The notes beneath the pieces were generated by a model that saw only the letters and a program-made list of their open reading frames with translations, was not told where the DNA came from and made no database searches. A DNA stretch of 25,207 bases from positions 24,714 through 49,920 of the forward strand of contig RQSC01000663.1 in the NCBI GenBank assembly GCA_013416795.1, read 5' to 3'. Below, in pieces: positions 2,790 to 21,133 of the stretch (positions are counted from its first letter, which is position 1; every line of letters begins with the position of its first letter). Made by a program: the position numbers and the translations under genes. The DNA comes from Prasinococcaceae sp. CCMP 1430. Taxonomy: Eukaryota > Plantae > Prasinodermophyta.

Positions 2790-2823
2790 CCCCCCCCCCC
2801 CCCCCCCCCCCCTCCCCCCCCCC
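2790..2823 (+). repeat. Poly-C tract (one T interruption)
   Basis: Directly visible homopolymer; the minus strand is poly-G. Confidence 0.95.
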
Positions 2824-3218: not shown

Positions 3219-3290
3219 NNNNNNNNNNNNNNNNNNNNNNNNNNNNNNNNNNNNNNNNNNNNNNNNNNNNNNNNNNNNNNNNNNNNNNNN
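3219..3290. other. Assembly gap (72 N) in the 5' region of ORC2
   Basis: N run. It prevents assignment of the ORC2 start codon. Confidence 0.99.
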
Positions 3291-5509
3291 CGGCGGCGGG
3301 CGCCAAGGCTGCGAGCGTGCGCGCGGCTGCGCCAGCGGCCGCAGCCGCGGCCAGCGTCGTCAAGCGCGGTAGGAGCAACGAGGGCCGTGAGCTGCGCGCG
3401 CTCGGCAGGGCCGTGCGTGCACAGGCAGCCAAGGTCTCCAAGGCGAGGACCGGCGCCGCGGCCGCCGGCGCCGACCCGCTGCTGCAGGAGAGCGTCGAGC
3501 AGCTCAAGGAGCGCTTCCGCGCCACGTTGGGCAGGGATGCGTCCTCAAGCAATAAGGGCTGGCTTGTCATGAAGATCCGGTTGGAAGAGAAGAAGGCCGA
3601 CAAGGAGAAGGCCGCCGCGTCGCCCTCGCCGGCGAAGGCTGGGCGCTCGCCCGCAGCGCGATCGTCGCCGCCGCAGCGGCAGCAGCAGCAGCGTTCACCA
3701 GCGGCTGCGCGGTCACCCACGCACAACCGCGCATCAGCCGGACGGAAGCGCGGGGCGTGCAGCCAGGCAGACGCCGGGGCTTCCGCACGCGCGCGCAAGA
3801 GACTCAACCTCGGCAGCGCGGACGGCATCGCGGGGCGCGATGAGGTAGAAAGCGAGGGCGACGAGGCCTCCGACGAGCAGCTCGAGGATGCACGGGCGGA
3901 CGACGACGGCAGCGGAGGGAGGGACGCCGATGTGGGCGACGACGACTTCTTCAACCGCGATGCGTGTGCAGATGCGAGCCCGGGCGCGGGCGCGGGTACG
4001 AGTGGCTATGTCGCAGCGCCTGTGGCGCCCACCGCAGTCGCGCGGCCGGCGGTCAACGGCGACGCGATCCGCGCGGCGATGCGCGCGGCGATGGGGCGTT
4101 CGATGGGAGGCGGCCTGACCATCGCGGCCGCCGCGCCCGCGGAGCCGAACGAGAGTGCTGGCAGGGGCGTGGACGCAAGCGCGATGGAAAGGGGCACCGG
4201 CACGGCGTGTGCACCTGGCACCGACGAAGCCGAACAGGAGGAGGAGGAGGAGGAGGGTGGGAATGGCCGCGCGTACATCGAAGCCACGCGCAAGCAGGGC
4301 GCGTCCGGCAGCACGGCCAAGGGAAGCAAGGGCGCCAAGGGCGCCAAGGGCGCCGCGCGCACCAAGACGAACAACCGCGCCGCGAGCGCCCCACTGAATG
4401 AGTCGTTGCTGGCGGACGACGCGGCGGTGGCAGCAGCGCTCGCGACGCTTCCCGACAAGCACGCGGCCGCGCGCGCAGAGCTTTTCGAGGTGTACGAGCA
4501 CGAGTCGGCGCAATGGGCACTGCGGCTGCGCGCAGGGAGCTCGCTGCTCTTCCACGGTTTCGGCTCCAAGCGCAAGCTTCTGGATGAGTTCGTCGCGCGC
4601 TCGTGCTCTGACGGCAGCGTGCTGGAAGTCGACGGCTTCGAGCAGGCGCTCACGGCGCGTGACGTGCTGCGCGCGGCCGCCACGATCGCGCGCGAGCACG
4701 CGGCGGCGGTGGCCAACGCCAACGCCGCCACGGGCTCGGCTGTAGACGCCGAGGGCGTGGCCGTGGGCGCGGCGATTAGTGGGATGTCCAATGCGGAGCT
4801 CTGCGCGGTGGTGCGCGCCGCCATGCATCTGCCGGGAGTCGATCCGCGCGCCGAGGAGAGCGGGTCCTCGGTGCCCATGCCTCCCCTGTACCTGGTGGTG
4901 CACTCGATCGACGGCCCCAGCCTGCGGAGCGCCGAGGCGCAAGCGCAGTTGGCCGAACTTGCCGCATGCACGCACGTGCGCGTGGTGGCCAGTGTCGACC
5001 ACCTGAATGCCGCGCTGCTGTGGGATCGCGAGGCGCTCGGGCGCTTTCGCTGGAGCTGGATCGAGGCGCCCACGTGGGCTCCATATACCTCCGAGGCGCG
5101 CAGCTTCGCGCCGCTGGTGGCGCCCCGCGCCGAGGGTCGCCGCGCGCAGGGTGCACTGCAGGTGCTGCAGTCGCTCACGCCCAACGCGCGGGGCATCTTC
5201 CGCATGCTCATCGACCGCTGCAACGCGCAGGCCCAGGCGGCCGCAGCGGCAGGCGGCCGCGGCGGCGGCGCCATTGGCATCAGCTTCCACGCGCTCTACG
5301 AGGCCTGCCGCGAGCGCTTCCTGTGCTCGAGCCAGGCCACGCTCAAGAGTGTGCTCACCGAGTTCGCCGACCACGAGCTGGTGCGCGAACGGCGCACAGC
5401 AGGCACGGGCGAGCGCACCGGGGGCGAGCGCGGCGGCGGTGACCTCATCCAGGTGGCGTTGCCCAAGGCGGCGCTCAGCTCGGTGCTTGAGGCCATGGAC
5501 GCTGCCTGA
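3291..5509 (+). CDS. ORC2: Origin recognition complex subunit 2 (start uncertain, upstream of or within the gap)
   Basis: The C-terminal half has the ORC2 blocks QWALRLRAGSSLLFHGFGSKRKLLDEF, LYLVVHSIDGPSLR, VRVVASVDHLNAALLWD, FRWSWIEAPTWAPYTSE, VLQSLTPNARGIFRML and the winged-helix block ISFHALYEACRERFLCSSQATLKSVLTEFADHELV. The N-terminus is long and low-complexity. Stop TGA at 5507-5509. Confidence 0.93.
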
Positions 5510-5538
5510 GCGCGTGCGCGCGTAAGAACCTCGCTCTA

Positions 5539-5544
5539 AATAAA
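5539..5544 (+). terminator. Possible polyadenylation signal AATAAA for ORC2
   Basis: AATAAA 30 nt after the ORC2 stop, in the ~160-nt spacer between convergent genes. Confidence 0.3.
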
Positions 5545-5669
5545 GCACATGGCACGCGGCGTCTCCGCGCTGCCCGCGCACGCAGGCCTGGCAGAACACT
5601 GTGCTTATACGCACTTCGTCAGAATCGGGGCTAGCGGCACCTGTGTGGCGCTGCGCGGCGCATAATGCG

Positions 5670-8600
5670 CTACGTCGCGCTCTCTGCGCCGCCAGCTTTG
5701 TCACCCACGCCGATGCTGCCCGCGCCGATAGCGTCACTGGGCCCTTCGCACGAGCCGTACAGCGCGCGCTCATACCCCTCGATCTCCGAGGCGGAGAGGC
5801 CGTTGAAAGCAACCGACTCGGGGGCGAGAGCACGCAGGCCGTCGTGGAGCGGCCCGCGGCTCCGCTCAGCGTACCAGCCGACGCGGTCGGGCGCTGACCT
5901 CATCGGCGTCAGCGCGGCCTTCAGTGCGCTGCCGCCATGAAAGCGCTCGCGCCCCTGATCGTCTCGCGAGTCGGTGGGAGTCACATGGGCGTCCTTCTGC
6001 ATGCACCTTGAGAGCGCGATATCTGCCGCCATGTTTTCGTTGCATTGGCCCTCCGCGACGCGCTCGCCTTCGCCGCGCCATCCCGCCGTTGCATCAGCAA
6101 ACTTCTCTAAGCCCGCGGAGTTGAAGAGGTACATGGTGTTCAGCACTGTGAGGGCGCCGGTGCTGGAGTTGGCCAAGGGGACGCCCTCGGCGTCGCGCTT
6201 GTTCCGATGCAAAGCGTCCTCAAACATCACGCGCCCTGTGTAGAGCGCACGCTGCTCGTCGCCCGCCTTGCTCTCAAGCTGTGCGATCATCTTGCGGACA
6301 TTCTCGACGACCACGTAGGAGTTGTCAGGCATGAAAAGGAAGTGGGTGAAGGCCTTCGTGTGGCCGCGGCAATTCAGAATGCGCAGCACTTCAAACAGCT
6401 CCTTTGCGTGGCCGAACTCGCGCCCCCGCACCAAGAATGGCTGCAGCGCCGCCTCGGCCTCAGCGTACGCGGGTCGTTCCGCCTTGAATGCATCGGTGGC
6501 ATATTGGCCCACGAAGAGCACGCCACTGCAGCGCTTGCCCCATGTGCGCCAGGAGCGCGTCGCCAAGCCCGACCGGATGCCTTCGACGTTCGTCGAGATA
6601 ACACACAGCAGCTTGATGGATGCACGCGCGGCATCCTCGCCATGGCCACGCACTACCCTCAGGTGGCGCATCGCGAGATCGTCTGTGGTCCCGTTCCAGC
6701 TCGGATAGCTGACAACGTCGCCCTGGGCGACGCCTTTGTGTTCATGCGCCTCCGGCAGGCCCTCGCCACCATAAGGGGCCACAAAGTTCGCAGAGCACGT
6801 GTCGACCTCGGTTGCCCATGCGGCCGTATTGCCGAGCCTTGCGTCGTCCCACCTAGCGTCCCCTTGCATATGGATAGCGCCCCCAGGTTTGTCAATGTTG
6901 CAGCACAGCAGACGCTCCCGGGTTGTGAATCCCTCGGCGCGCTCCACCGCCGCGGCCGCTGCCGCTGGCTCCAGTGACTTGAGAGGCACCGGGTCGAGCT
7001 GCCACCCACAGCCGCACTGGGTACCAATCCACTGGGACTTGGACGCGTTGGACCCTGCAGGTGTATGGATGACGAAACCGGAGCGGTCGAGGTATTGCTG
7101 CCTCGTTCGCTCGTTGCCGATTGCGAACGCTTCACCAGGGGCGAGGCCAGAGAGCTCGATCTCCCCGCTATCTTTCTGTGGCAAACTGAAGATCTCCCAT
7201 ACGCGACGCTCAGCAGCAGCGCGGCGGCGTTGCACCTGAGGCTGCCAAGCGTGGTGCATGCTTTCGAGACGAGGTGCGCCTTCGCGCCTGTAGTAATGAA
7301 AGACCACGTTCACCGACGGGATGTAGAAATCAAAACCATGGCTGTACAAACGGAGTGCCCGCGCTGGTTCCTCGCCCATGAAAACGTACGGCATGTACTT
7401 GTCGTAAGGCACCGCACGCTCACTCTCGCCGAGGCCAAAGCTGAGTCCCGCTGCCCAGAATCCCGTGAGCTCCGGCCTGCCGACCCAGGGATTCTCATCG
7501 CCTGCCCCCTTGTTCGCCAGGCTCCCACCGTTCAGAAACAGCCTGCAGATGCGTGGCACCATCTTGTAGTGGGAGATGCCATCCAGCCAGGGCTTTTCCA
7601 TTCTGTCGTCTGCCATCGGGTACGCCGTGAGGATGCCGCGCGGGTTCCCGGCCAGCTTCCAATTGTCGATGAGGAGCGAGTCCCAGTTCTGCGCGAAGAG
7701 GGAATGGGAATCCACCTGGAGGAAAAAAGTCTCGTCTTCTAGGAGCTGCTGCGAGTCATACCGTGTCACGCACACGCCCTCCGAATCCTCCGCGCGCTGC
7801 CTGCTGACGCGCACTTGTGACCGACGGCAATTGCTCTCCCCGACCTTGTTGCAATACATGTCCAGGCAATCGAAATCGAACGGGACGGCGAACTGATCAC
7901 CCGATGCTGTCTGCTGCACAATGCCGATGAACACGCGCGACGCGTTCGCGGCGTTCTTGAAAGCGCTCTCAAGGGTGCGTGGGCACTCGCGATCCCGGAA
8001 TGATGCGAGCGCCATGAAGACAGACGATGACGACGTCGAGTGGTTGAGGTGTAAGCGATCCCAAAACGGGCCGTTCCGCGTCAGATGGCGATTTCTATCC
8101 GCCTCGGTCACTGTCTCGAAGGGGTGTCCCATCGTCTTGTTCGTAGCATTTTTGTCGCTGTCGGCGCCATGCTCCGGCTTGGACTCGCCGTGCGCCGGCT
8201 TGGACTCCCCTCGCGCCACGGCGTCCTGCTCGCGCAGCCTTGAGAGGCGCTCTCGCTCTCGCTCCGTGCAGCTCGAGGGCACGGGCATCTGCGGGTTGTG
8301 CCGAAGCAATCCCATGTTGCAACCGTCCTGCTTCGGCCCAAGCTTTCTGAGCGCACTCGTGGCGGCCTCGCGCAGCATCGGCAGCGCGTGTGCGGCCACA
8401 CGCGTGGGCCAGGATTCGATGACCGGGTCCGGCTGGTGTTTTTCGCCGGTAGCGGTCGCCACGCCGCCTGTGGTGGCTTTGTCCCCTTGGTCGCGCTCCC
8501 CTAGGAGCCGCGCGCTGGCGCTGCCGGTCGACCCGGCGTCCACCCGCTGAGACAGCAGCGAAGGCCGCAGCAGCGCGTCGACCGACTCGACCGACGTCTC

Positions 8601-9131
8601 TTCGAGCTCTTGCTCGAGCTCCTCCCACCACGAAAGGCCTTGCGTTTTGGCACCGGGCGCCAGCCCCCCGCGCACTCCGCCGCGCGGAGACTGCCTGTGC
8701 TCCCACACGACGAGAGGCGCGAGCACCGTGAGCGCCATAAGACCGATGGCGATGACGGTGAGTAGCGAGGGCGCACCGGCCCCAGCTGCAGTCGCGGCAT
8801 GGAGCGGCAGCGCCGCCGCCCCCGACGCGGATCCGCGCTCGCGGCGCATGTCGTCGACTCCTTTCCCCACACCGCCCCCTACTATCTCTAGAGCCCCGCC
8901 CTCGGGCGCGACAGGCGCGACCGCGCTCGCGCGGGGCGGGGCGCGCGCAGCGTCCTGTGGCGCGGCAGCCGGCGCCGCGCCGTCCTCCAGCGCGCTGTCA
9001 ACACCCGCGCGGCGGCGCGGCGGCCGCCGCAATTCGATCTGATATGCGCCGATGCGATTTGATGGAGGTCTTCCTGTGTGTGGAGACGAGACCGAGCGGC
9101 CCAATGCGATTTGATATGGATGCGAGCTCAT
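5670..9131 (-). CDS. Type II membrane glycosyltransferase fusion: GT60 (Gnt1/Gnt2-like GlcNAc transferase) plus C-terminal GT31 (C1GALT1-like) domain, ~1153 aa
   Basis: Probable ATG at 9131 (MSSHPYQ). One hydrophobic helix LLTVIAIGLMALTVLAPLVVW (~8703-8765). GT60 motifs VFMALASFRDREC, FLQVDSHSLF, ILTAYP, FWAAGLSFG, VPYD..YVFMGEE and RLYSHGFDFYIP..VVFHYY (~7289-8027). GT31-like motifs KLLCVIST, TWGKRC, HFLFMPDNSYVVVENVRKMI, LYTGR, ADIALSRC and DSRDDQGRERFH (~5757-6618). Confidence 0.85.
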   Translation of the reverse strand: MSSHPYQIALGRSVSSPHTGRPPSNRIGAYQIELRRPPRRRAGVDSALEDGAAPAAAPQDAARAPPRASAVAPVAPEGGALEIVGGGVGKGVDDMRRERGSASGAAALPLHAATAAGAGAPSLLTVIAIGLMALTVLAPLVVWEHRQSPRGGVRGGLAPGAKTQGLSWWEELEQELEETSVESVDALLRPSLLSQRVDAGSTGSASARLLGERDQGDKATTGGVATATGEKHQPDPVIESWPTRVAAHALPMLREAATSALRKLGPKQDGCNMGLLRHNPQMPVPSSCTERERERLSRLREQDAVARGESKPAHGESKPEHGADSDKNATNKTMGHPFETVTEADRNRHLTRNGPFWDRLHLNHSTSSSSVFMALASFRDRECPRTLESAFKNAANASRVFIGIVQQTASGDQFAVPFDFDCLDMYCNKVGESNCRRSQVRVSRQRAEDSEGVCVTRYDSQQLLEDETFFLQVDSHSLFAQNWDSLLIDNWKLAGNPRGILTAYPMADDRMEKPWLDGISHYKMVPRICRLFLNGGSLANKGAGDENPWVGRPELTGFWAAGLSFGLGESERAVPYDKYMPYVFMGEEPARALRLYSHGFDFYIPSVNVVFHYYRREGAPRLESMHHAWQPQVQRRRAAAERRVWEIFSLPQKDSGEIELSGLAPGEAFAIGNERTRQQYLDRSGFVIHTPAGSNASKSQWIGTQCGCGWQLDPVPLKSLEPAAAAAAVERAEGFTTRERLLCCNIDKPGGAIHMQGDARWDDARLGNTAAWATEVDTCSANFVAPYGGEGLPEAHEHKGVAQGDVVSYPSWNGTTDDLAMRHLRVVRGHGEDAARASIKLLCVISTNVEGIRSGLATRSWRTWGKRCSGVLFVGQYATDAFKAERPAYAEAEAALQPFLVRGREFGHAKELFEVLRILNCRGHTKAFTHFLFMPDNSYVVVENVRKMIAQLESKAGDEQRALYTGRVMFEDALHRNKRDAEGVPLANSSTGALTVLNTMYLFNSAGLEKFADATAGWRGEGERVAEGQCNENMAADIALSRCMQKDAHVTPTDSRDDQGRERFHGGSALKAALTPMRSAPDRVGWYAERSRGPLHDGLRALAPESVAFNGLSASEIEGYERALYGSCEGPSDAIGAGSIGVGDKAGGAESAT

Positions 9132-9469
9132 GTCATGTTGGTTGATGGGGGTCCGCGGGTGGTGTGTTGAGCATGCATACGACGGCCGGCGCGCTCTCCG
9201 ACCCCTCCGTGCGGTGGGTGCACGTCGAGGTGGGGAGCGGGCTGCCACGGCGGAGGGGCAGTGGCGCGCGCGCGCGGGCGAGCGCCACTCGCGCTCCCTC
9301 GCCCGCGTCGGCGCTGCGAGTGGCGGCGCCCCGCGCGCGCGCGCGTGCGCGTCCCAGCCAGCCAGGGCGCGCCATTGATGCAAGGCGGAGGTCGCGACGC
9401 GCGAGCCGCTGCCAGTGCTCACGCAGCTGAGCTCGAGCGCCCACAGCGCACCCCACGGTGGCGACGGGC

Positions 9470-11716: not shown

Positions 11717-14700
11717 TCACACGGCGAGAAGCTCTCGCTGCCACCGCGACGTCTTTGGTGCCACGGTGGCACGGGCGGCTGCAGAGGCTGCGAAGCCATC
11801 GCCTCTCAGAGCCGCCACATAGCTCGCAGAGCTCATGCCCACGGCCACGAGCCTCGCGCGATGCAGAACACCAGCCGCACCGGTGGCAGCGTTTGCGTCT
11901 GCAGCTGCATTCGCGTTTGGCACTCCGCCCCCGCCAGCACCAACCACCCCCGCCGCTCCAGCTCCACCCCCACCCCCGGCGGCAGCTTGGCCTGCCACAG
12001 GCGCACCCGCGGCGCCAAGCAAGCCCGCGTTGTTGAGCGCGTAACTCAAAGAGACCATGCCACGCACGCCCACAAAGACGCCCCCGAGCTGCTCGCCGAG
12101 CCACGTGCCGTCCACGCGCGTGGCGCACGCGCTCAGATATGCACCCACGGCGCGCACTTGGTCCTGGTACGCAACGCCAGCGTTTGCCGAGTCCGCAGCG
12201 GGCACTAGAGTGCCCCAATCTGACCCAGCGGCCATCTTGTTGGTCGCCACTGCCAGCCTCGACGCTTCATTGTACAGCGGAGGAGGCCTCATCGGCCGAA
12301 TCCCAATGTTCGGAAGGATCGACGCCGTGGCGGCGAGGACGGCGTTTGACATTGCCATAAGCTCATCGGCATCGCCCAAACCTTCAGCTCCAGCCTGCGC
12401 GTCGGGGACTGGCCCTTGCGCCAGCTGTGGGTGGTTTGCACAGGCGCGCGAGATCGCAGCAATGGACTTGGCGAACGTGCAGTTGTGAAACTTGAAGCGC
12501 ACGGGCTCCGGCATGCCGCCGAGAGTGCGCTGGACCTCGCCGCTCGCCATGAAATCGAAGGCAGCCGTGTCCAGAGCCAAGCTATGCGGGTGGGGGACGT
12601 GCACGCCCTCGACGGGGCAGCCTCGCAGCGCGTTGACGACAAACGGCAGCAACGGGGACAGCAGCGGCACGGAGCGGTCGAGCGCGGGTGATGCCTCCTG
12701 CGCCGCCGCGAGGCACACCCGCACGAACTGGAAGACCGCGCAAGCAGCCTGGGCCGCACACAGCTTGGCGTTCGCACCAACAACGGCGCGCTTGTACCAG
12801 GCCACCGTCGCACAGCCAGCAACGAACTGCAGCATATCAGGAGGAACTCCCGACGAGGCCAACGCCCGCGCCAGAGCGCCCGCTTCGGCGCGTGCGCGCC
12901 CTGCGGCCTCGGATCCCGCATCAGAGCTGGCCAACGCGACGAGGACGGCGTCGACCACGCCCACAACGAAGCGAAGGAGGCCTGCGCTTCCCTTCCATCC
13001 GTCGAGCCCCGCCACGGTGGTAAGGGCGCTTGAAACGTCAGCCTGCACCATGCAGGCGAGGTCGTTCGCAAGTGTTGATTGGATGAGCCGCACCAGTGCA
13101 GCGTGCAGCATGCCACGCATTGACAGCGCCTTGTCGAGCAGGGGCACCAGCACGCTCGCACCGCTCGCCGCGTCCCCATCACCAGAGTGCAGCGGCGCCC
13201 CGAGCTCAGCAGCCGCAGCCGCGATGACGCCGAGCGACACCGTCGCATACACGGCACCGTCCTGCAGTTGCAGCGAGGATTTCGCCAGCGCCTTGCCGCC
13301 CGCCATGACCGCCGCGGGGACGCCCTGGAGCGCCCGCCGAGCGGCCGAGCGGCCTTGGTTGCCCATGAGCCTCGAGCGCTCGGCAACGCGCTTCAACACG
13401 GCAGCCGCAGACTCGCGCCTCCACGAGACGTCAGGAACACGCAGCGCGCGTGGGGCGGCCTGCCACGAGCTGCCACCGCCCTCGGCACCAATGTCGGAGA
13501 TCCCAGCGAAGAGTGCGCTCGTTGGGGGCGTGCGGGAGAGGACCGCGGCTAGCTCGCGCTGGACGGTGACGAACGGATCCACGCATGCAGCGAGCCATGC
13601 CGCCGTGAGCTCCCAAGCAACGTCTGTGGGCACCGGCGGAGGCGCTGCCGTGCGCTCGACCGGCCCCACGTTGGCAGAGGCCTCCGCATCGTCAGCGCGG
13701 CGCCAGAGCACGGACAGCAACACCCGCATGGGCGCTTGCCGCGCTTCCCACAGACCCGGTTCTGCCCAGTGCGAGCGCGGCCCATACGCCGCGATGAAGT
13801 CCTTCCAATCGCGCAGGCCAGTGCGGATCATGAGCCACTCCAATGCCGCCACCGCTGCCGCCGTCGACTCCAGCCGATCGGCCGCTTGACGGCGCGCGGC
13901 AGGGGAGGCGCCAGGCCGAGCAGCCTGGGCGGACGCGCTCGCGGCCAACCTGAAAGCCCGGTCGAGCGGGCCCGAGCAGTGCTCCTTCGCTGCCTTGGCC
14001 AGCTCGCGGCATGCCTGCAAGAAAGGGTGCAGCGACTCCACCAGGCCGGCGTAATATTCCTCCTTCATTGCCTTGTCACGCTCAGCGCGCCTGCAGGCCT
14101 GCTCCATCATTGCGTCCATATCGTTGGGATCTGCATCGGGCGATTCACCCTCGTGGTCGTATCCGCCGCCGCCGAGCAGAGCACTCTGTTGAGGCTCGGG
14201 AGCCGCCGGGGGCTGCGGCAAGGTGAGCGCAGCAGCAAGGGCACGCGCCGCCGCGGCGGAAACTTCGGGAGGTCGCGACACGCCCTCGCCGACGTGTGCA
14301 GGCGGCGACAGGAGCGACCCGAGGGCCGACGTCACGAAGAGCGCGCGCAGAGAGGCGCCCGCCGCTGCCGAGGCGCATGCTGCGGCGTACGCAGCGGCGT
14401 CACGCGGCATCGACTCCGGAACGGGCGCCGTGCGCGGCAGAGCAGCCGCGATGGCGTTGAGCGCACCCTTGAGAGCACTAGCGGCCTCGGCAGCGTCGAG
14501 GGCAGCCTCACGCGCCTTGGTGCGGCGCCGAGATGCGATGACCCAAGCGGGTAGCTGGCCGTCGCCCGTGATCGTCTCGCCACCAGACGAAAGCGACCAT
14601 CGCGCAACGGCGCCGTGCGCCGCTGTTTGAAAAGGGGTCGCTGCGAGCCCTCCCCCGGGCATGTCTGTGTCGCCCTTTGCGAGTGCGGCGTGTGCATCGT

Positions 14701-17700
14701 GCTCGTGCGTCAGCTTGTCCAGGGCCTTGTTGATCTGACCGGACACAGCCTTCGCTGCTCCCATCGACGCGTTGACGTCCGTCTGCGTGCGCGAGAGAAC
14801 GGCAGAGGTGCCGACGATGCGAGCCAGTGCTAGCAGTCCACTAAGCAAGACCTCGCGCCCGCCGCGATCAGCGTGCTCGAATGGCACAAGGTTGATCATG
14901 CAGTGCATCACCGTGTTCCACTGCGCAGCGGGCAAGCTCGCGGCAAGGACCGCGCAGAGCTGCACGCTGTGGCGCAACTCTGCGAGCGATCCCACCCGCG
15001 CCCCGCGCCCGTGCCCGCCTGCTGACGGCGCACGGAGCATTTGCAAGAATCGAGACGACGCGCGAACCGACCTCTGCACGCCCGCACCAGGGGGCGCAAT
15101 CGCTGACGACACCAGCTGAAGCGCACAGGCGCATGGTCTGAGGTTCGCCAGTCCTGACGGACCAGAACTTTGAGGGCAGCAGCGCAATGCTGACATCACG
15201 AAGTCTGGAACCCCTTCACAGCAGCTGCTGACGTCCGCGTCTTGCCCTCCGGCAGCACTGGCAGCGCGCTGGAGCTGCGACCAGGCGGTCACTGCGACAT
15301 TGACGGATCCGTTGCCCTTCCATAGGCGTGCCAGTCCAGCCACGCGCTTGAGCACCGCCGACGCGTAGCGTTCCCGAGCATGACCGAGTCTCACGAACGC
15401 GCCCATGCGCCCACCAGCCGCGCGCATGCCCTCAAATGCAGGATTCTGAAACGCGGGCGATGTCTCGAGCAGGCGCTGCACCAGCGGCCAGCAGTGTCGC
15501 TGGACCGAGCCGTTTGTGCGTCCGTCGCTACATCTGACATCCGCGAGCGCGTGGTACAGGGGCGCGATGTACATGCACGAGGCCCACGCGCGCTCAGCAA
15601 CAAGAGCTTTGTCCTCGGGCGTCGTGACCACATCGAGCGACGCGAATGCAGCCGCCTGCACAGTTTGCCAGAAGCCAGCCCCTCCAGCGGCGTCCGAGAC
15701 AGCAATGGCGCTCGCAATTTTCGACACGAGCTCGCGCGACTTTTCGCTGTAGTCGTACGAGCGCCAGACGAGGTCGACCGACGTGTCGATGTCCGCGATG
15801 GCATGCTGCACGCACTCGGCAGCCTCCTCAGCGGACTGCCCACTGGGCTCCACGACTGGTATTCGGCCCGAAAACAGGTCTTTTGCAATCGCAAAGTACG
15901 ATTCCATGTCGGTCGGCAGGGGGCGTGGCAAGACCGCAACCCCCGCTTGGATGGAACGGGAACGATTGGAGGCGTCTGGATTTTGCGTCCGCGCTGCAAT
16001 CGCCTCAGTCGTGCTGCCAGGGATTACCGAGGGTTGCTGGCCGATGCCACGGCCAAAGTCGCCATGCCAGGCGCTGTTGTCACCGTCGCCCCCCAAATCG
16101 TCACCGAAGCCGCCGTCGTCCCAGTCGATATCCTCGATGGCGTCGCTCGCTGTCTGCGCACCGGTAACGAGGTCATCACTGTCGTCACTGGCATCGCTCT
16201 CCGTATCAGCCAGAGCATCATCGTGGGTACGTTTTGCTTTCTGCGCCCAAGGGCGCCTGCATTTGCACCGCGTGCACATGCACGTGTTTTTGTGCGGTCG
16301 GGGCGCCTTCCTGCGACTCCTGGAGGACGCAGGGGCCGCCGCCCACCCCCTGGCTGGCGTGAGCGGCGCAGAACCTTCTCCCAGTCGTCGAGTCCTGCCC
16401 AGAGCCAGTCGCCGCGATCGCGGTGCACCCCCCAGGCCAAAAGAGGCACTGCGAGTCGAGCCTTCGTCGCCCGAGTCGACACCCGCTCCCCTATCTGCGA
16501 GTCGCAACAGGATGCGGCCGAGACGGGCCGACTGCTGTTGGGGCGTGCGCACGACACGCGGCCGGCGCTGTAGTCGAGGTGCCGTGCCTGGTGTGCGCAG
16601 TCGAATTGCACCTTGGCGCGCGAGTCCGACAACTCTCTCACCCTGCGGCGTCGCCGAGGCGGACGGCGTGCCCGTATGCACTCTCATCTGCCCGTGCTCA
16701 CGCGAAGCACCAGCACCGATGTTTCCCGACATTTCGCCACTAGCCGCTACACGATGATTGATGCCTGCGCGCGTGGGTGGCCGAAGAATCCTCGCTGGGG
16801 ACTCGTCGTCGTCGTCGCTCGAGTCGATGAGCTGGACGCGCCGTGGGCCAGTCGAAGGCTGCCGCGCGGATGACCCGGCGCCTCCGTCCCGCACTTTCTC
16901 AGGGCCACCGATTGCTGGCGTGCGCATCGCTGGACTCGTCGCATGCCTGCGTCCCCGTACTTGCTGCCCAATCGGCTGCAAGACCGTCCGTGCGTGCGCA
17001 CGCGATGGGCCAGGTGTCTGCTGCGAGGAGTCGGACGCCACGTTGCGCGCCGGTGCCCGTTGTGACTTCGAAGCACTGCCACTGCCGCCATCTCCGATGC
17101 GCGGCGCGGCGCGCGCATTGTGCTCAGTGGGCTCGGCACGAGGTCGCACGATTGCGGCGCCTGCGCGCGGCGGCTGGGGGAGCTCAACCTCAACATTCTG
17201 CGCATTGGCTCGGCGGCGGATGTACTTCCAAACCTTGGCCGCGTTCCACGTCTGTCCGTTCGCGTCGCTCGCCTCCAGCTTGGTACGCAGCGCCACCAGC
17301 TGGGCTTGTAAATGGTCTGCAACGCTTCGGTAGCCGCGCTTTGTCGCATTGTAAATCTGCAGACCGAGTGGTTTCATGCCGCGACGGCGCATGCAGAACG
17401 AGCAGTTGCACAACCAGAAGTCGTCGGGGTGCTCCTCCTCGTAGCAGGTAGGGCAAACCCAGTCGGCCGCACGGGCCTCGCGCAGGCTCAAGCCGAAGCG
17501 CACAACCAAGCAGCGCGAGCAGAAAGTGCCAAGCGCGCTCGAGCACCTGGAGCAGTTGCTGTGGCCGACGCACTCAGCGTTGGCATTGCCGCCCTCACAG
17601 CGGGGGCACCCCGGCTCCCCGCACGTCATTTTCTGTCGACAGAAGTGGCACGTCGTCCCGAGGATGGGATCTAGCACACCTTGCCTCACGGTCGAGCGGT

Positions 17701-20700
17701 CAGCTTCTCCAGCCCGAGGCGCGATGTATCTGCCGCGGGCCACGTCCACCTCTGTATCAATGTCGAAGCCGAGAGCGCCAGCTCCAGACGACCCTCCAGC
17801 AGCAGCGTGCAGCAACTGCTGCTGCTGCTGCTGGCGTCGCTGTTGCCTCGTGTCCTCTCGCCCCTGTCGCTCTTGCTGACGCGCTTGGCGGCGCAAGTCA
17901 CGGCGGCGCTTCTGCTCTCGTTGCTGGCCCTCGGTGAGCAATGGGCCGTCCTCGAACTGCAGCACAGGCTTGGCAAAACGCCGCGCCGCCCCCTCATTGC
18001 CTCGAGCAGCTGCGTGTCTCATCGAGCGTCGAAAGACCGCGAGAAAGTCGGGGACTCGAGCACGGCCATTCGACCTGCGCGGCACGGCACGAGCGTAGGC
18101 GCGCATGCTCTGCCGGAGGATGGTGAGGGCCGCAGCCGGGCCATAGTCGATGTCCTCGACTTCGTACCAAGGCTCAGCATCGAGAGCCGTTCCTACCGGC
18201 AAGCGTGATGTCAATGCGAGTGCGGCCGCAGGTGACGCCATCGTCGCCGTAGGAGAGGGCGGCCGGGCGCGGGGTGCCGGCGGCCGTCGAGGCGGCGGGA
18301 TCGCTTGCTTGGTTCTCTGCTTTTTCTGCGGCGGGGCCAGTGATAGGCGCGCCTGTTCGGCCTGCGGCTGTGCTCGACCGGGATCCCGCTGCGCACCTGC
18401 ACGATTTTGCCTGACCAGCTGCGCGAGCGACATGCCTTCCTCGTCAGTGCTGCTTTCGTCGTTCTCCACGTCAGGCCTCCACGCTTCCTCTTCGTCCTGT
18501 GTCTCCGTTTCGATCCGCCGCTGCTTCTCTCTGTCTCGCACGAGCTGCGGCGCGTGTTCTTTGCATCGTGCGAGGTACTCATCGCGAAGGAGCACCCCGC
18601 CGCTCCTCTCGACGCACATGAGGTGAAACGACTTCGGGCATGCCTCGCACGAGCATCCCAAAGCGGCACCGCGCTTCTTGCAGTGCGCGCACTCAAGCTC
18701 CATAGCACGCTGTATTTCTGCTCGCAACCCGACCAGCCGCCCGTCCTTCCAGTACGCTTGGGGGCACCACTCGGCGCAGTCCTCGTGCACGTGCTTGCCT
18801 CCATGATTCAGCAGCGGGCGCTCGCGCGTGCCGTGGCCCATGCACAGCACGCACGTAGGTTCCACGCTGCGACCACCACTGGTCACTTTCTCCGACCCCA
18901 CCCCCGCGCGTTGGTGAGGCGACGCAGACACATCCTGCGTCGGCAGCGTGCGCTCTTGCGGGGCTGCAGGAGCTCGGCGCAGCGCAAAGAGCGGTGCGGC
19001 ATCGTCTTCACTGCTGCTATCGTCAAGGCCAGCACCGGTGGACGTCTCTCGTGCAGGTGATGTCGTTTTGGGCGGGAGGACCGGATGCGGCGGCACGTTC
19101 TGCTCCTCCCCGGCCGTGTTGGCAGCTTGTGGTTCGCGAGAGCGCTGCACATCCTGCTCATTGCCATTGCTGCCCTCGTCGCCAAGGCCCGCCTGCAAAG
19201 ACTGCTGCTGCGCAGCAGCGGCGGCGGCGACGAGCCGCCGCTGCTGCGGCGCGGCCGATGGCGTGCTCTTTGGCCCACGCGGCCTCTGAGCGAGCGGCAC
19301 GTCATCGTCCTCGCTCGAGTCCTCTTGCAGTCCGACCGCCGCACACCGCTTCTTGAAAGCGCGTCGGGGCGGCGTCCGTCGCGGCGGCTGCGAAGCCGGT
19401 AGAGGGGCCGGCGGCTGCAGAGGCCATGCCAAGAGCTCTTGGTCCACACCGCCGCTGCCGTCGTCCGGCTCAACAGACGCAGGGTCATCCGCACCACCGG
19501 CGTCCTCCGCCTCTCGGCGCTCTCGCATCTCTTGCTCCCTCACGCGCGGCAAAGCGTGCTGCTCGCACCGCGCCGTAAACCTTTGCTTCTGCAGCAGGCC
19601 ACCGCTCGCTTCGACGCACATGAGGTGGAAGGACGCCGGGCAGCCCTTGCGCGAGCAGCCCAGCGCCGCGCCAGGCTTCTGGCAGTACGCGCAGCCAAGC
19701 TTCTTCGCACGAGCGACCGACTTGGCCACGTTGACCAGCTGGTCGTCCTCGTTCAGGTACGCCTCGGGGCACCACTCCGCGCAGTCGGCATGGAGGCGCT
19801 TTCCCTCGAACTCCCCCAGGGGCCGCTCGCTCGTGCCCTTTTCCAGGCACAGCTCGCACGTCGGCGCCTCTTTGACCCGGTGGCGGGAGCAGCGCGCGGT
19901 GAAGGTGTCCTTGTCGAGCATGCCACCGCTCGGCTCCACGCACTTGAGATGGAACGTCCTGCCGCAGCCCTTCCGCAGGCACTTGAGCGGCGCGCCGGTC
20001 GTGTTGCAGTGCGCGCACCGGAGCTTTGAGGCGCGCTTGACAGCCCTGGCCACGTTGACGAGCTGGTCGTCCTCATTCAGGTACGCCTCAGGGCACCACT
20101 CGGCGCAGTCTTCGTGCACGCGTACGCCCTCGACCACGACGATCGGCCTCGCTTTGGTGGCTCGGGCGCCGCACAGCTCGCAGGTGTCCTCAGCAGGCAG
20201 CGGCGATGCCCTGCGCGCCGCCGCAGCCGAGCGCCGCTGCGCCGAAGCTGGCGCCGACGCGAGCGCTGGCACCGCCGCCGCCACGCCGGCCCTGGCCGCA
20301 GCCGTGCCTGCCGGCAATGCCGCCTCAGCCGACGGAGACCCCGGCGGGGAGGCGTCCGTTCCCTCCATGCTGGCCTCCGTCGTGGCCTCGCTCCCGGTGC
20401 ACGTCGGCGGCTGCTGTAGCTCCTCCTGCTGCTGCCGCTCCCGGGCCTCCCGTGGGTCCCGCGGTTGCTGCATGCTCTGCTGCTCGAGCTGCCCTGGACG
20501 CTCAAGCACATCCACAGCCTCGAGCGGGGGCTGTCGGTCTGTATCGCCATGCTGCTGCTCGTCGCGGCCGTCCTCGCTCGTGCGGGGTAGTCGCGGCCTT
20601 TTCCCCCCCGCCTCGACAGCTGCCTCGCCGCGGCGCGCAGCGCGGTGCGCGCCGCTGCCTCGCCGCCGCCGCCGCTTGCGTGTGCCGCCGCCACCCCCTT

Positions 20701-20923
20701 CCTCGCCGTCGGACGGCTCGCTGCAGCTGTCGGGCACCGTCCCCACGTCGTCCTCGCCGCCTCGCGGCGCCCCCACGCCCCCCCCCTGCGCCAGACGCAG
20801 CAGGACGCAGACTGCAGCTGACCCCGCCGCCGCCACGCGCGCGCGCGCGCGCGCCGCGCGCGCGCTCTGGCAGCGCCTCTGCCGAAAATTCGCGCGCTTT
20901 CGCGCGCGTTCGAGCCGCGCCAT
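11717..20923 (-). CDS. ~3,070-aa multidomain nuclear protein: 3x extended PHD (zf-HC5HC2H), zf-4CXXC_R1, then a Mus7/MMS22-like helical solenoid; start uncertain
   Basis: A 9.2-kb stop-free frame with recognisable domains spread through it. First ATG at 20923 (the track's 20926 start is TTG). The first ~50 codons look like (GC)n non-coding or intron sequence, so the true start may be a small upstream exon. Confidence 0.85.
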   Translation of the reverse strand: MARLERARKRANFRQRRCQSARAARARARVAAAGSAAVCVLLRLAQGGGVGAPRGGEDDVGTVPDSCSEPSDGEEGGGGGTRKRRRRRGSGAHRAARRGEAAVEAGGKRPRLPRTSEDGRDEQQHGDTDRQPPLEAVDVLERPGQLEQQSMQQPRDPREARERQQQEELQQPPTCTGSEATTEASMEGTDASPPGSPSAEAALPAGTAAARAGVAAAVPALASAPASAQRRSAAAARRASPLPAEDTCELCGARATKARPIVVVEGVRVHEDCAEWCPEAYLNEDDQLVNVARAVKRASKLRCAHCNTTGAPLKCLRKGCGRTFHLKCVEPSGGMLDKDTFTARCSRHRVKEAPTCELCLEKGTSERPLGEFEGKRLHADCAEWCPEAYLNEDDQLVNVAKSVARAKKLGCAYCQKPGAALGCSRKGCPASFHLMCVEASGGLLQKQRFTARCEQHALPRVREQEMRERREAEDAGGADDPASVEPDDGSGGVDQELLAWPLQPPAPLPASQPPRRTPPRRAFKKRCAAVGLQEDSSEDDDVPLAQRPRGPKSTPSAAPQQRRLVAAAAAAQQQSLQAGLGDEGSNGNEQDVQRSREPQAANTAGEEQNVPPHPVLPPKTTSPARETSTGAGLDDSSSEDDAAPLFALRRAPAAPQERTLPTQDVSASPHQRAGVGSEKVTSGGRSVEPTCVLCMGHGTRERPLLNHGGKHVHEDCAEWCPQAYWKDGRLVGLRAEIQRAMELECAHCKKRGAALGCSCEACPKSFHLMCVERSGGVLLRDEYLARCKEHAPQLVRDREKQRRIETETQDEEEAWRPDVENDESSTDEEGMSLAQLVRQNRAGAQRDPGRAQPQAEQARLSLAPPQKKQRTKQAIPPPRRPPAPRARPPSPTATMASPAAALALTSRLPVGTALDAEPWYEVEDIDYGPAAALTILRQSMRAYARAVPRRSNGRARVPDFLAVFRRSMRHAAARGNEGAARRFAKPVLQFEDGPLLTEGQQREQKRRRDLRRQARQQERQGREDTRQQRRQQQQQQLLHAAAGGSSGAGALGFDIDTEVDVARGRYIAPRAGEADRSTVRQGVLDPILGTTCHFCRQKMTCGEPGCPRCEGGNANAECVGHSNCSRCSSALGTFCSRCLVVRFGLSLREARAADWVCPTCYEEEHPDDFWLCNCSFCMRRRGMKPLGLQIYNATKRGYRSVADHLQAQLVALRTKLEASDANGQTWNAAKVWKYIRRRANAQNVEVELPQPPRAGAAIVRPRAEPTEHNARAAPRIGDGGSGSASKSQRAPARNVASDSSQQTPGPSRAHARTVLQPIGQQVRGRRHATSPAMRTPAIGGPEKVRDGGAGSSARQPSTGPRRVQLIDSSDDDDESPARILRPPTRAGINHRVAASGEMSGNIGAGASREHGQMRVHTGTPSASATPQGERVVGLARQGAIRLRTPGTAPRLQRRPRVVRTPQQQSARLGRILLRLADRGAGVDSGDEGSTRSASFGLGGAPRSRRLALGRTRRLGEGSAPLTPARGWAAAPASSRSRRKAPRPHKNTCMCTRCKCRRPWAQKAKRTHDDALADTESDASDDSDDLVTGAQTASDAIEDIDWDDGGFGDDLGGDGDNSAWHGDFGRGIGQQPSVIPGSTTEAIAARTQNPDASNRSRSIQAGVAVLPRPLPTDMESYFAIAKDLFSGRIPVVEPSGQSAEEAAECVQHAIADIDTSVDLVWRSYDYSEKSRELVSKIASAIAVSDAAGGAGFWQTVQAAAFASLDVVTTPEDKALVAERAWASCMYIAPLYHALADVRCSDGRTNGSVQRHCWPLVQRLLETSPAFQNPAFEGMRAAGGRMGAFVRLGHARERYASAVLKRVAGLARLWKGNGSVNVAVTAWSQLQRAASAAGGQDADVSSCCEGVPDFVMSALRCCPQSSGPSGLANLRPCACALQLVSSAIAPPGAGVQRSVRASSRFLQMLRAPSAGGHGRGARVGSLAELRHSVQLCAVLAASLPAAQWNTVMHCMINLVPFEHADRGGREVLLSGLLALARIVGTSAVLSRTQTDVNASMGAAKAVSGQINKALDKLTHEHDAHAALAKGDTDMPGGGLAATPFQTAAHGAVARWSLSSGGETITGDGQLPAWVIASRRRTKAREAALDAAEAASALKGALNAIAAALPRTAPVPESMPRDAAAYAAACASAAAGASLRALFVTSALGSLLSPPAHVGEGVSRPPEVSAAAARALAAALTLPQPPAAPEPQQSALLGGGGYDHEGESPDADPNDMDAMMEQACRRAERDKAMKEEYYAGLVESLHPFLQACRELAKAAKEHCSGPLDRAFRLAASASAQAARPGASPAARRQAADRLESTAAAVAALEWLMIRTGLRDWKDFIAAYGPRSHWAEPGLWEARQAPMRVLLSVLWRRADDAEASANVGPVERTAAPPPVPTDVAWELTAAWLAACVDPFVTVQRELAAVLSRTPPTSALFAGISDIGAEGGGSSWQAAPRALRVPDVSWRRESAAAVLKRVAERSRLMGNQGRSAARRALQGVPAAVMAGGKALAKSSLQLQDGAVYATVSLGVIAAAAAELGAPLHSGDGDAASGASVLVPLLDKALSMRGMLHAALVRLIQSTLANDLACMVQADVSSALTTVAGLDGWKGSAGLLRFVVGVVDAVLVALASSDAGSEAAGRARAEAGALARALASSGVPPDMLQFVAGCATVAWYKRAVVGANAKLCAAQAACAVFQFVRVCLAAAQEASPALDRSVPLLSPLLPFVVNALRGCPVEGVHVPHPHSLALDTAAFDFMASGEVQRTLGGMPEPVRFKFHNCTFAKSIAAISRACANHPQLAQGPVPDAQAGAEGLGDADELMAMSNAVLAATASILPNIGIRPMRPPPLYNEASRLAVATNKMAAGSDWGTLVPAADSANAGVAYQDQVRAVGAYLSACATRVDGTWLGEQLGGVFVGVRGMVSLSYALNNAGLLGAAGAPVAGQAAAGGGGGAGAAGVVGAGGGGVPNANAAADANAATGAAGVLHRARLVAVGMSSASYVAALRGDGFAASAAARATVAPKTSRWQRELLAV
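14800..15910 (-). other. Mus7/MMS22-like conserved core (helical solenoid continues to the C-terminus)
   Basis: The block order matches my recollection of the Mus7/MMS22 family: ERAWASCMYIAPL, HCWPLVQRLLE, YASAVLKRVAGLARLW, EGVPDFV, LAELRHSVQLCAVLAASLP, then INLVPFEHADRGGREVLLSGLLALAR. Recognised by eye only. Confidence 0.5.
17310..17700 (-). other. zf-4CXXC_R1 (CDCA7/R1-type) zinc finger
   Basis: DPILGTTCHFCRQK...GTFCSRCLVVRFG...WVCPTC...CNCSFCMRRRG..PLG....ATKRGYRSVADHL matches the CDCA7 pattern CHQCRQK / GQFC..CL..RYG / W.CP.C / CNCSFC / G..L...A...G...V..YL. Confidence 0.9.
18554..18853 (-). other. Extended PHD finger 3 (zf-HC5HC2H)
   Basis: CVLC...HVHEDCAEWCPQAYW...CAHCKKRGAALGCSCEACPKSFHLMC...RCKEH. 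Confidence 0.88.
19556..19858 (-). other. Extended PHD finger 2 (zf-HC5HC2H), tandem duplicate of finger 1
   Basis: CELC...LHADCAEWCPEAYLNEDDQLVNVA...CAYC...GAALGCSRKGCPASFHLMC...RCEQH. Confidence 0.88.
19880..20182 (-). other. Extended PHD finger 1 (zf-HC5HC2H)
   Basis: CELC...VHEDCAEWCPEAY...CAHC...GAPLKCLRKGCGRTFHLKC...RCSRH. Confidence 0.88.
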
Positions 20924-21104
20924 CAAAACGCACGCGGGCGCGCACGAGCCGGAATCGCATGGCGACGCGCGGACAGCGTACAGATCCAGGGATCTGAATG
21001 GACCCTATATAGATCTAACCCTACATGCGACCATGCGTGCGTACTGTACCGTAACTGCCGCACCACCGCGCGCGGCCGTTTCTCGGCGCGCCGGCGTTGG
21101 GCAC

Positions 21105-21131: not shown

Positions 21132-21133
21132 NC

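Follow-up and report, generated by a model that had tools for sequence, protein, structure and literature searches.

In a 25,207-nucleotide stretch of DNA from Prasinococcaceae sp. CCMP 1430 (contig RQSC01000663.1, positions 24,714 to 49,920), referred to here as the window, a very long reading frame on the minus strand encodes zinc-finger modules followed by an extended helical region. This locus raises two questions: whether a single gene joins these parts and, if it does, what the helical region is. An earlier note on this DNA proposed that chromatin- and DNA-reading fingers are fused to a recombination scaffold of the MMS22/Mus7 type. Our analysis supports the fingers and points to another interpretation of the C-terminus. 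With a probability of about 0.6, we regard the product as a lineage-specific, domain-accreted, multivalent chromatin reader of the CDCA7 class that carries an orphan helical platform, and not as an MMS22/Mus7 fusion.

The giant reading frame and its transcription

According to the ORF listing and its translation, the minus-strand ORF at 11717..20926 comprises 3,069 amino acids without an internal stop, and its first ATG, at 20923, yields a protein of 3,068 aa. The whole coding sequence (11717..20923, minus strand; 3,068 codons, stop at 11717-11719) is apparently a single exon, and its translation without a stop bears out the single open frame of 9.2 kb described previously. Since stops are expected in random sequence at approximately 0.021 per codon at the observed GC content of 68%, the chance of 3,069 consecutive open codons is approximately e^-66. 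The longest stop-free runs of the other frames are 420-843 codons, with one exception of 1,381 codons that contains the neighbouring ORF for a 1,368-aa glycosyltransferase.

An allele present on a TARA metagenome scaffold (L001) is 99.35% identical and ungapped over the ORF; no indel occurs within 9.1 kb of ORF, while gaps open 15 times in the 8.4 kb of flanking sequence. The zinc fingers show six synonymous and no nonsynonymous changes between the two alleles, and the helical domain shows 12 synonymous and three nonsynonymous changes (pN/pS 0.09), while the pN/pS of the linkers is 0.8-1.4. As far as this allele comparison reaches, it shows that the fingers and the helical domain are under purifying selection. 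The reading frame of the TARA allele seems to be interrupted (ORF 6..1796 versus 1384..9237), but this sole interruption is a run of Ns in the scaffold, and a frameshift or intron was rejected. The metagenome gene caller began this allele at an internal Met, only because of the same N gap.

Contigs of run X1, which is guessed to be RNA and in which DNA carry-over is possible, match the window with 100% identity and no joints over 14010-18109, 18320-18821 and 19458-19753. The linker that follows the CDCA7-type finger is covered by RNA-labelled contigs at 15209-16480, 16514-16770 and 16763-18109; the first of these, 1,272 nt long, extends over the boundary between linker and helical domain, which is also crossed by a metatranscriptome contig at 15825-16150. 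Additionally, contigs from seawater metatranscriptomes are present in both halves of the ORF. Splicing that separates the fingers from the helical region, an outcome that the earlier note had named as contrary to its proposal, was looked for, and no splice joints were seen in the RNA-labelled contigs over 14010-18109, the RNA nature of X1 being a guess. Two joints (17116>19365 and 17173>19215, with sides of 20-22 nt) were found only in run X4, an assembly of unknown type; they were put down to cross-matching of low-complexity sequence and rejected as splicing.

Because the ORF is free of indels, both the fingers and the helical domain are under selection, and colinear, unspliced RNA-labelled contigs run across their junction, the two parts are likely to be one gene. 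Alternatively, the open frame could be real and still be read as at least two transcription units or as isoforms, as might happen, for instance, if a promoter lay inside the 1.4-kb linker, so that the finger and helical products would be mostly separate. The near absence of constraint in the linker (residues 1206-1672) and in the N-terminus (pN/pS 0.82 and 0.65, respectively) would agree with this alternative, as would the nature of the RNA evidence, which consists of short contigs rather than full-length reads and has holes of 33 nt (16481-16513) and 30 nt (14378-14407) between the listed contig pieces. The internal Met start called in the TARA allele could be cited as well, although the N gap explains it. 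Against separate products stand the 9.2 kb without a stop, linkers that are free of indels against the allele while the flanks have 15, contig depth that is alike on both sides of the junction between fingers and helical domain, the two contigs that run from the linker into the helical domain and the lack of joints in the contigs. We therefore consider separate products improbable. As a component of our main reading, the frame is probably a single genuine nuclear gene, very large and with one exon, from a marine picoeukaryote with a GC-rich genome; weak Atlas hints on taxonomy suggest a green alga of prasinophyte grade.

The N-terminal half and its ePHD fingers

The protein begins with a basic, low-complexity region rich in Ala, Gly and Arg (residues 1-246; 20186..20923, minus strand), recognised by its composition, which includes an RKRRRRR cluster and has no Pfam match. 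This region is poorly constrained relative to the TARA allele (pN/pS 0.65), and some of it may belong to the 5′ UTR.

A Pfam search with the whole protein identified zf-HC5HC2H in three stretches (E 8.5e-24). Based on the PF13771 model, whose gathering score is 29.1 bits, we localized ePHD finger 1 at residues 247-349 (19877..20185, minus strand; 47.7 bits, and 37 bits with PF13832), finger 2 at residues 355-457 (19553..19861, minus strand; 52.0 bits) and finger 3 at residues 690-791 (18551..18856, minus strand; 40.5 bits), which confirms the three extended PHD fingers claimed previously. All three have the pattern of a C2HC pre-PHD followed by an atypical PHD, with Cys/His columns that are invariant in the three-finger alignment. 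Fingers 1 and 2 are 62% identical in amino acids and 69% identical in nucleotides. The best solved relatives of these fingers in the PDB are the ePHDs of KMT2D, Jade-1, PHF7 and PHF6, and BRPF1 was also found; KMT2D and Jade-1 are among the relatives of finger 1, and finger 3 matches the PHF7 ePHD. HECT, SET, bromodomain and PWWP domains were not found by Pfam in the 3,068-aa protein.

An acidic short motif, (G)L/x-[DE]-D/E-S-S-[ED]-D-D-..-PLA/SLA..R, was seen by inspection in three copies at residues 531-549, 632-650 and 820-841 (18401..19333, minus strand). A fourth copy occurs at residues 1363-1381, in the linker after the CDCA7-type finger. Any function of this motif would have to be inferred from its sequence. 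The segment immediately upstream of the CDCA7-type finger (residues 801-1085) is moderately constrained (pN/pS 0.23).

The CDCA7-type finger

The zf-4CXXC_R1 finger (residues 1088-1205; 17309..17662, minus strand) matches PF10497 with 79.3 bits against a gathering score of 22.7 (E 1.2e-20 in the whole protein), so the domain named in the earlier note stands. Using phmmer and alignment, we found that it matches the solved human CDCA7 chains 8TLE and 8YV8 with E 5e-10. In the alignment to 8TLE_A, all 11 signature cysteines are kept (C1092, 1095, 1101, 1106, 1135, 1138, 1157, 1160, 1172, 1174 and 1177), and R1096, Q1097, G1132, R1142 and S1175 are the equivalents of human CDCA7 R274, Q275, G294, R304 and S330. 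The definition of class I zf-4CXXC_R1 domains, also called HMZF, requires conservation of the ICF residues R274, G294 and R304 (PMC10538959). Because the three of them (R1096, G1132 and R1142) and the 11 cysteines are kept, the algal finger falls within this published class I definition.

The roles of R274, Q275, R304, S330 and G294 have been described, and the animal and Arabidopsis domains bind hemimethylated DNA (PMC11343034). All of the residues tied to recognition in that work are retained in the algal finger, a conservation that favours the CDCA7-style sensor of hemimethylated CpG proposed previously; by analogy, we infer that it would bind hemimethylated CpG in the major groove, like the human, Xenopus and Arabidopsis domains. 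Two inserts are absent from the tested CDCA7 domains: one with four extra Cys (residues 1107-1129) and one of eight residues, which brings the segment at residues 1161-1171 to 11 residues, eight more than in human CDCA7. These inserts could be specificity modifiers. A PDB match of the Cys-rich part of the finger to RNF31/HOIP (E 0.0018) was attributed to the spacing of the cysteines alone and rejected as a sign of relationship. The CpG observed/expected ratio of the window is 1.17, which is not depleted; thus, the window sequence itself does not point to heavy CpG methylation.

The linker and the C-terminal helical domain

The finger is followed by a low-complexity linker (residues 1206-1672; 15908..17308, minus strand) with no Pfam match and weak constraint (pN/pS 0.82). 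This linker includes the SIM-like acidic motif VQLIDSSDDDDE at residues 1363-1381 and a small C-x-C-x2-C-x-C cluster at residues 1548-1557. Next, residues 1673-2900 (12224..15907, minus strand) form a conserved domain, predicted to be all-helical, that is ARM/HEAT-like by secondary structure and has no family assignment, and an Ala/Gly-rich tail (residues 2901-3068; 11720..12223, minus strand; pN/pS 0.20) ends the protein. The C-terminal part has a diverged orthologue in a second marine taxon, on TARA scaffold L002; the orthologue fragment is detectable over residues 2542-2941 (12101..13300, minus strand) with 33-45% identity, and the end of this orthologue resembles the last residues of the tail.

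AlphaFold models predict the final ~1,400 aa to be all-helical, and this part has more hydrophobic residues than the linkers. The model of residues 1673-2872 from a single sequence reached a pLDDT of 41 and a pTM of 0.28, and that of residues 2542-3068 with two L002 pieces reached 49.5 and 0.51; in both of these low-confidence models, the helices are regular and 15-25 residues long. The earlier description of ~1,400 aa of helical repeat-like sequence is thus fair wording for what the models predict, at this low confidence, and both were too poor for a fold assignment. Pfam matches to B12D (15-16 bits, below the cut-off) were judged to be chance and were rejected as a family for this domain.

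A phmmer search with residues 1673-2872 against 1.84 billion representative proteins gave three matches, all of them alleles or orthologue fragments: near-identical fragments at 98% and 79%, and P0004. The relatives of the domain in this collection are its own alleles and the one 33-45%-identical fragment from the second marine taxon. A homologue search with the C-terminus alone found no relative, and searches with the whole protein and with region 1660-3068 found a 99% allele, P0001, as the sole match. When the same architecture was sought via the finger (region 1080-1215, in proteins of 1,690-5,370 aa), there was no match beyond P0001. Scans of metagenome contigs with the C-terminal and ePHD alignments matched patterns and gave no relative confirmed by tblastn, and sequence and profile searches of the PDB with the C-terminal domain found no related structure. 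In the ESM Atlas, none of the clusters listed contains both PF10497 and PF13771, and a literature search on the combination of ePHD, CDCA7 finger and helical domain, or on MMS22L in algae, found nothing relevant. The previous statement that no protein of this architecture has been described agrees with all of these searches of proteins, Atlas clusters and literature.

One explanation for the orphan domain is that it is a very divergent member of another alpha-solenoid family, such as the karyopherin-like, Pds5/WapL/Scc2 cohesin-regulator-like, TOG, PSME4/Blm10 or GIGANTEA-like proteins, whose function it would then follow. In language-model searches of the ESM Atlas with the C-terminus, the 401 aa of highest conservation and the finger region, the nearest clusters of the C-terminal domain were PSME4/Blm10, GIGANTEA_C, exportins and Urb2. 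Likewise, fold searches (Swiss-Prot AFDB twice, PDB Foldseek, ESM Atlas and VIA wide) with the low-confidence models matched only solenoids, among them karyopherins, WapL, Pds5, TOG domains and designed repeat proteins. However, these matches are scattered over many unrelated families, the Atlas recognition scores were low (1434 and 1168 versus 2300 for known families), and the fold matches (TM<0.4; Z<=11.5) are generic or meaningless, lying inside the stated noise for helical repeats, with no sequence support. Membership in one of these families is therefore unlikely, and we retain the orphan helical platform as the preferred description.

The proposed MMS22/Mus7 assignment

According to a review, plants have no clear MMS22L orthologue that is known, and a reader, TONSL, brings MMS22L to post-replicative chromatin (PMC9409234). 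A protein whose final ~1,400 aa were a Mus7/MMS22/MMS22L homologue would be a RAD51-promoting scaffold brought to such chromatin by its own readers of hemimethylated CpG and histones, and would fill the place of MMS22L, which is apparently missing from plants. The C-terminal domain is large, helical and conserved, as MMS22-family proteins are, and a very divergent plant orthologue would have escaped notice where no clear one is known (PMC9409234). A shape match in the Atlas to the recombination regulator FIRRM points in the same direction, but its TM of 0.37 is not meaningful.

The earlier note had suggested HMMER and AlphaFold/Foldseek runs for this assignment, which had come from a reading of the raw sequence only. 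We looked for matches to PF09462, the profile named there, and to the N- and C-terminal models of MMS22L. No Mus7, MMS22 or MMS22L Pfam model matched at E<=1 with the whole protein or at E<=10 with the C-terminus and three sub-pieces of it; HMMER filters may hide very weak profile matches. The three phmmer matches among 1.84 billion representatives include no Mus7/MMS22-family protein, and neither sequence nor profile searches of the PDB gave a related structure. MMS22L, Mus7 and MMS22 are absent among the 30 Swiss-Prot AlphaFold matches listed for the low-confidence models (pLDDT 41 and 49.5), and no MMS22-family protein occurs among the language-model neighbours of the domain; the structural runs returned only generic ARM/HEAT-like repeats. 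Homology to Mus7/MMS22 is consequently very improbable and not borne out by any profile, sequence or PDB match. The proposed delivery of an MMS22-like scaffold by reader modules is left with modules that are real and lie in one frame, and its key premise, the MMS22 identity, is unsupported. A looser version, to which we give hardly any weight, is that the orphan domain could be the functional counterpart of the MMS22L said to be missing from the green lineage, too diverged to be recognised by sequence methods and wired to a hemimethylated-CpG sensor and ePHDs instead of, or besides, TONSOKU; in that case, DNA hemimethylation would be the label by which nascent chromatin is selected for fork repair through recombination.

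A proposed role on methylated chromatin

The CDCA7 finger is currently seen as a sensor of hemimethylated CpG through which HELLS/DDM1 is recruited to heterochromatin just after replication. In our main reading, a multivalent CDCA7-class reader with an orphan platform, three ePHDs and one class I CDCA7-type finger would be strung on long, disordered acidic and basic linkers, followed by a helical domain of ~1,250-1,400 residues that appears to be under purifying selection and belongs to no recognisable family. The CDCA7-type finger would bind hemimethylated CpG, and the ePHDs would add contacts to histone tails or DNA; jointly, the fingers would tether the helical platform, a putative docking surface for a partner, to chromatin that is methylated and has probably just been replicated.

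Should the finger still recognise hemimethylated CpG, the alga would be using this mark to position something besides, or beyond, a remodeler, and the protein would offer a naturally occurring test of which other functions can be recruited to nascent methylated DNA. The protein also shows that a class I finger should not be equated by default with a CDCA7 orthologue in early-branching green algae. Its practical value is limited at present; apart from one species, the protein has been met in alleles from the environment and, in a relative, as a single fragment.

Comparison with known systems

The features that the algal protein shares with MMS22L, Mus7 and Mms22 are only its large size and mostly helical content; the tests run, in which the fold queries were of low confidence, detected no sequence, profile or fold similarity of its C-terminus to them. 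The homology between MMS22L and yeast Mms22 is itself remote. The ePHD readers PHF6, PHF7, G2E3, Jade/BRPF and KMT2C/D contain the same modules of C2HC pre-PHD and atypical PHD, and several ePHDs per chain are also known in PHF6 and G2E3, but none of these readers carries a zf-4CXXC_R1 finger or the C-terminal domain of the algal protein.

CDCA7, CDCA7L and plant CDCA7 alpha and beta have in common with the algal finger the 11 cysteines and R274, G294, R304, Q275 and S330, and the algal finger differs from these class I fingers by its 4-Cys and 8-residue inserts. Class I CDCA7 proteins of vertebrates and Arabidopsis are small, with a few hundred residues, whereas the algal protein has 3,068 residues, three upstream ePHDs and a downstream helical domain of 1,400 aa; as a whole protein, it lies outside a CDCA7 type characterized by small size and no further recognised domain. 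Beyond the finger, the vertebrate and Arabidopsis class I proteins contain no domain that has been recognised, enzymatic or otherwise (PMC10538959).

In larger chromatin proteins of the green lineage, zf-4CXXC_R1 fingers occur in class II, DDR, together with DDT and WHIM, and in class III, IBM1/JMJ24, together with JmjC; the class II fingers lack the ICF glycine, and the class III fingers lack every ICF residue (PMC10538959). DDT, WHIM and JmjC were not found by Pfam in the 3,068-aa algal protein. Plant classes II and III are a precedent for an embedded zf-4CXXC_R1 finger; the algal finger instead keeps all of the ICF residues, and what is new, judging from the domains recognised here, is the joining of a finger with every class I hallmark to three ePHDs and a conserved helical platform.

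Reading frame and structure of the giant gene

One long coding frame on the minus strand of the window (25,207 nt, ~68% GC, four runs of N) encodes four genuine zinc reader modules, along with a helical domain that is conserved but fits no recognised family. As the earlier note had claimed, this 9.2-kb frame is single and open: ORF 11717..20926 is translated without a stop into 3,069 aa, or 3,068 residues from its first ATG at 20923. At the base composition of the window, stops are expected at ~2% of random codons; thus, the chance of so long an open run is ~e^-66. Open runs in the other frames are at most 420-843 codons long; the one exception, of 1,381 codons, contains the neighbouring 1,368-aa glycosyltransferase ORF. 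GC3 is high throughout the giant ORF (0.63-0.91).

The locus is also present, at 99.35% identity, on scaffold L001 from a TARA metagenome. The L001 alignment to the ORF is ungapped across 7,559 and 1,546 nt, with 15 gap openings in the flanking 8.4 kb, and the only interruption of the allele's ORF is a scaffold gap of Ns. Among the 69 substitutions, 38 fall at third codon positions. The synonymous/nonsynonymous counts are 6/0 in the four zinc modules (pN/pS 0), 12/3 in the helical domain (0.09), 4/2 in the tail (0.20) and 3/2 in the segment before the CDCA7 finger (0.23), versus 7/12 in the N-terminus (0.65), 4/9 in linker residues 1206-1672 (0.82) and 1/4 in linker residues 461-689 (1.41). 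The low values in the zinc modules and helical domain indicate that the structured parts are under purifying selection in the frame of the ORF. In this one allele comparison, the linkers vary freely by substitution, not so far by indels.

Run X1, a putative RNA run (labelled 'RNA?'; 7.8 Mb of contigs), contains 66% of the words of the giant gene. Three stretches, 14010-18109, 18320-18821 and 19458-19753, are matched by X1 contigs with 100% identity and without joints. The start of the helical domain falls inside contig 15209-16480, and contigs 16514-16770 and 16763-18109 extend through the linker and on into the CDCA7 finger. Contigs from seawater metatranscriptomes map to the finger half of the gene (17338-17829 and 18240-18523) as well as to its helical half (14441-14596 and 15825-16150). 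The single transcript proposed across the finger-helical junction is therefore favoured by unspliced colinear contigs of putative RNA, although contigs are no proof of one continuous molecule.

On one side of the giant gene is a gene for a voltage-gated chloride channel (CLC), on the other a short divergent intergenic region. The CLC gene, convergent with it at a distance of 313 nt, consists of two plus-strand ORFs (9458-10555 and 10580-11404) matching the first half of PF00654 and its second half, respectively, which implies a short intron or a frame change at ~10555-10580. This split suggests that the genome has introns, whereas the 9.2-kb giant gene has no splice joint over the contig-covered stretches. 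Farther away are a plus-strand ORC2 gene with RecA-like and WHD domains (3017-5509, with an N gap at 3219-3290 inside the ORF), the minus-strand 1,368-aa ORF (5670-9776), whose residues 585-898 match a GT60-type 'GlcNAc' glycosyltransferase domain in Pfam, with no GT31 match at E<=0.001, and a plus-strand protein kinase domain fragment (1600-2085), which adjoins an 803-nt N run (424-1226) and belongs to a gene incomplete in the assembly. Upstream, the next identified gene is an A/B-type cyclin on the same strand (22352-23665, Cyclin_N and Cyclin_C), and no Pfam match was found in the region between (~21000-22100). The neighbourhood is compact and unremarkable for a eukaryote.

Extended PHD fingers and linkers

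Pfam analysis of the whole protein identified zf-HC5HC2H/zf-HC5HC2H_2 at three stretches and zf-4CXXC_R1 once. Scanned as separate pieces, ePHD 1 (residues 247-349), ePHD 2 (355-457) and ePHD 3 (690-791) all passed the gathering score of 29.1 bits, with 47.7, 52.0 and 40.5 bits, respectively; the N-terminus and all three long linkers gave no Pfam match. All four modules, as first read from the sequence, exceed their gathering scores. The alignment of the three ePHDs has 46 invariant columns, including every Cys/His ligand, and ePHDs 1 and 2 share 62% protein and 69% DNA identity. Their nearest solved relatives in the PDB are the ePHDs of KMT2D, Jade-1, PHF7, PHF6 and BRPF1. The ePHDs of AF10, PHF6, Jade and BRPF contact histone tails or DNA.

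In the predicted disordered linkers, an acidic cluster of Ser, Asp and Glu, with PLA/SLA..R after it, occurs in four copies, at residues 531-549 (19277-19333), 632-650 (18974-19030), 820-841 (18401-18466) and 1363-1381 (16781-16837). Speculatively, these short motifs could be phosphorylated or could bind SUMO or histones; the fourth, VQLIDSSDDDDE, resembles a SUMO-interaction motif. Separately, an isolated C-M-C-x2-C-x-C cluster, CMCTRCKCRR (residues 1548-1557, 16253-16282), lies in an otherwise disordered linker and has no Pfam match.

The helical C-terminal domain

The C-terminal ~1,400 residues have a hydrophobic fraction of 0.25-0.33, compared with 0.13-0.18 in the linkers, and are predicted as an uninterrupted series of helices in AlphaFold models of low confidence (pLDDT 41, pTM 0.28; pLDDT 49.5, pTM 0.51). 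No Pfam family matched this domain at E<=1 (whole protein) or E<=10 (domain and three sub-pieces), the sole match being a sub-threshold B12D. No sequence relative was found in the PDB, either with the protein query (nothing at E<=10) or with a three-row profile; arcadin-1 (E 0.22), from a PDB sequence search, was regarded as a chance match.

In a word-indexed search of 5.8 billion proteins, the whole protein retrieved only a 99% allele in its length class, and the domain alone retrieved nothing. Exhaustive phmmer analysis of 1.84 billion representatives identified three proteins, two of them near-identical fragments. The third, P0004 (340 aa, 39% identity, E 1e-4), comes from the 1,695-bp TARA scaffold L002. 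Using tblastn and allowing a frame change at ~nt 370-381, the match widens to residues 2542-2941 with 33-45% identity and takes in the motifs PLLPFVVNALRGCPVEG and AAFDF. Hence, the domain is present in at least one further taxon, in a short contig that covers the C-terminal part only, the attachment of the fingers lying beyond its reach. The two blocks on either side of 370-381 align well, and the +1 change needed between them is due either to misassembly or to a very short intron of that taxon.

Fold searches (Foldseek against Swiss-Prot AlphaFold models and the PDB, ESM Atlas shape search, VIA-align) gave scattered ARM/HEAT-type matches, i.e., karyopherins, WapL, Pds5, TOG domains, eIF3c and designed repeats, with TM <0.4 and Z <=11.5, inside the tool's stated noise for helical repeats. 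Recognition scores were low for the language-model neighbours, which were generic (PSME4/Blm10, GIGANTEA_C, exportins, Urb2). The earlier note had proposed a Mus7/MMS22-like C-terminus, a fork-repair scaffold delivered by the fingers, and its mechanism requires that identity. Plants are described in a review as having no clear MMS22L (PMC9409234), an attractive gap that adds appeal to this proposal, yet is no evidence for it. MMS22L, Mus7 and Mms22 are absent from the Pfam, PDB, protein, fold and language-model matches listed for the domain, and no family was matched by sequence, profile, fold or language-model comparison. The tests being negative or, with low-confidence models, uninformative, the proposal is not borne out, and we consider it very improbable.

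The CDCA7-type finger and comparison with CDCA7

The zf-4CXXC_R1 finger (residues 1088-1205) scored 79.3 bits against a Pfam gathering score of 22.7, and its top phmmer match among all PDB chains is human CDCA7 (8TLE and relatives, 8YV8; E 5e-10 to 2e-9). TCHFCRQK, LGTFC and VVRFG align with TCHQCRQK, RGQFC and RNRYG of human CDCA7, and CNCSFC is the same in both; consequently, R1096, Q1097, G1132, R1142 and S1175 correspond to R274, Q275, G294, R304 and S330. In CDCA7, R274 and Q275 confer hemimethylation selectivity, R304 and S330 make backbone contacts and G294 maintains zinc-site integrity; hemimethylated-DNA preference has been reported for the human, Xenopus, sea anemone, oyster and Arabidopsis domains (PMC11343034). 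Class I fingers retain 11 signature cysteines and three ICF residues, and class I proteins are regarded as CDCA7 orthologues (PMC10538959). Judged by its sequence, the finger is class I. Compared with human CDCA7, it has a 16-residue longer loop within residues 1107-1129 (17537-17605) and eight more residues (within 1161-1171) ahead of CNCSFC. The longer loop contains four additional cysteines and one histidine (C-x8-C-x5-C-x2-C) and might form a further zinc site that human CDCA7 lacks. This loop also has a weak PDB match, RNF31/HOIP (E 0.0018), which is probably explained by nothing more than the spacing of its cysteines. Despite the predicted hemimethylated-CpG reader, the window (1-25207) shows no CpG depletion (observed/expected 1.17; GpC 1.31).

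The combination of ePHD and zf-4CXXC_R1 was found neither in a homologue search restricted to the length class of the giant protein, nor among the ESM Atlas clusters listed, nor in a literature search, and 'PHD' never occurs in the text and supplements of a 180-species CDCA7 survey. These searches would miss shorter or divided orthologues from algae yet to be sampled; within their scope, the earlier claim that no described protein has this architecture holds. From what is known of the CDCA7 and ePHD families, the class I finger would sense hemimethylated CpG and the ePHDs would contact histone tails or DNA; the finger and ePHD readers may thereby place the helical domain on chromatin as a protein-interaction platform. 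The giant protein is, in our view, a CDCA7-class protein with a new domain architecture.
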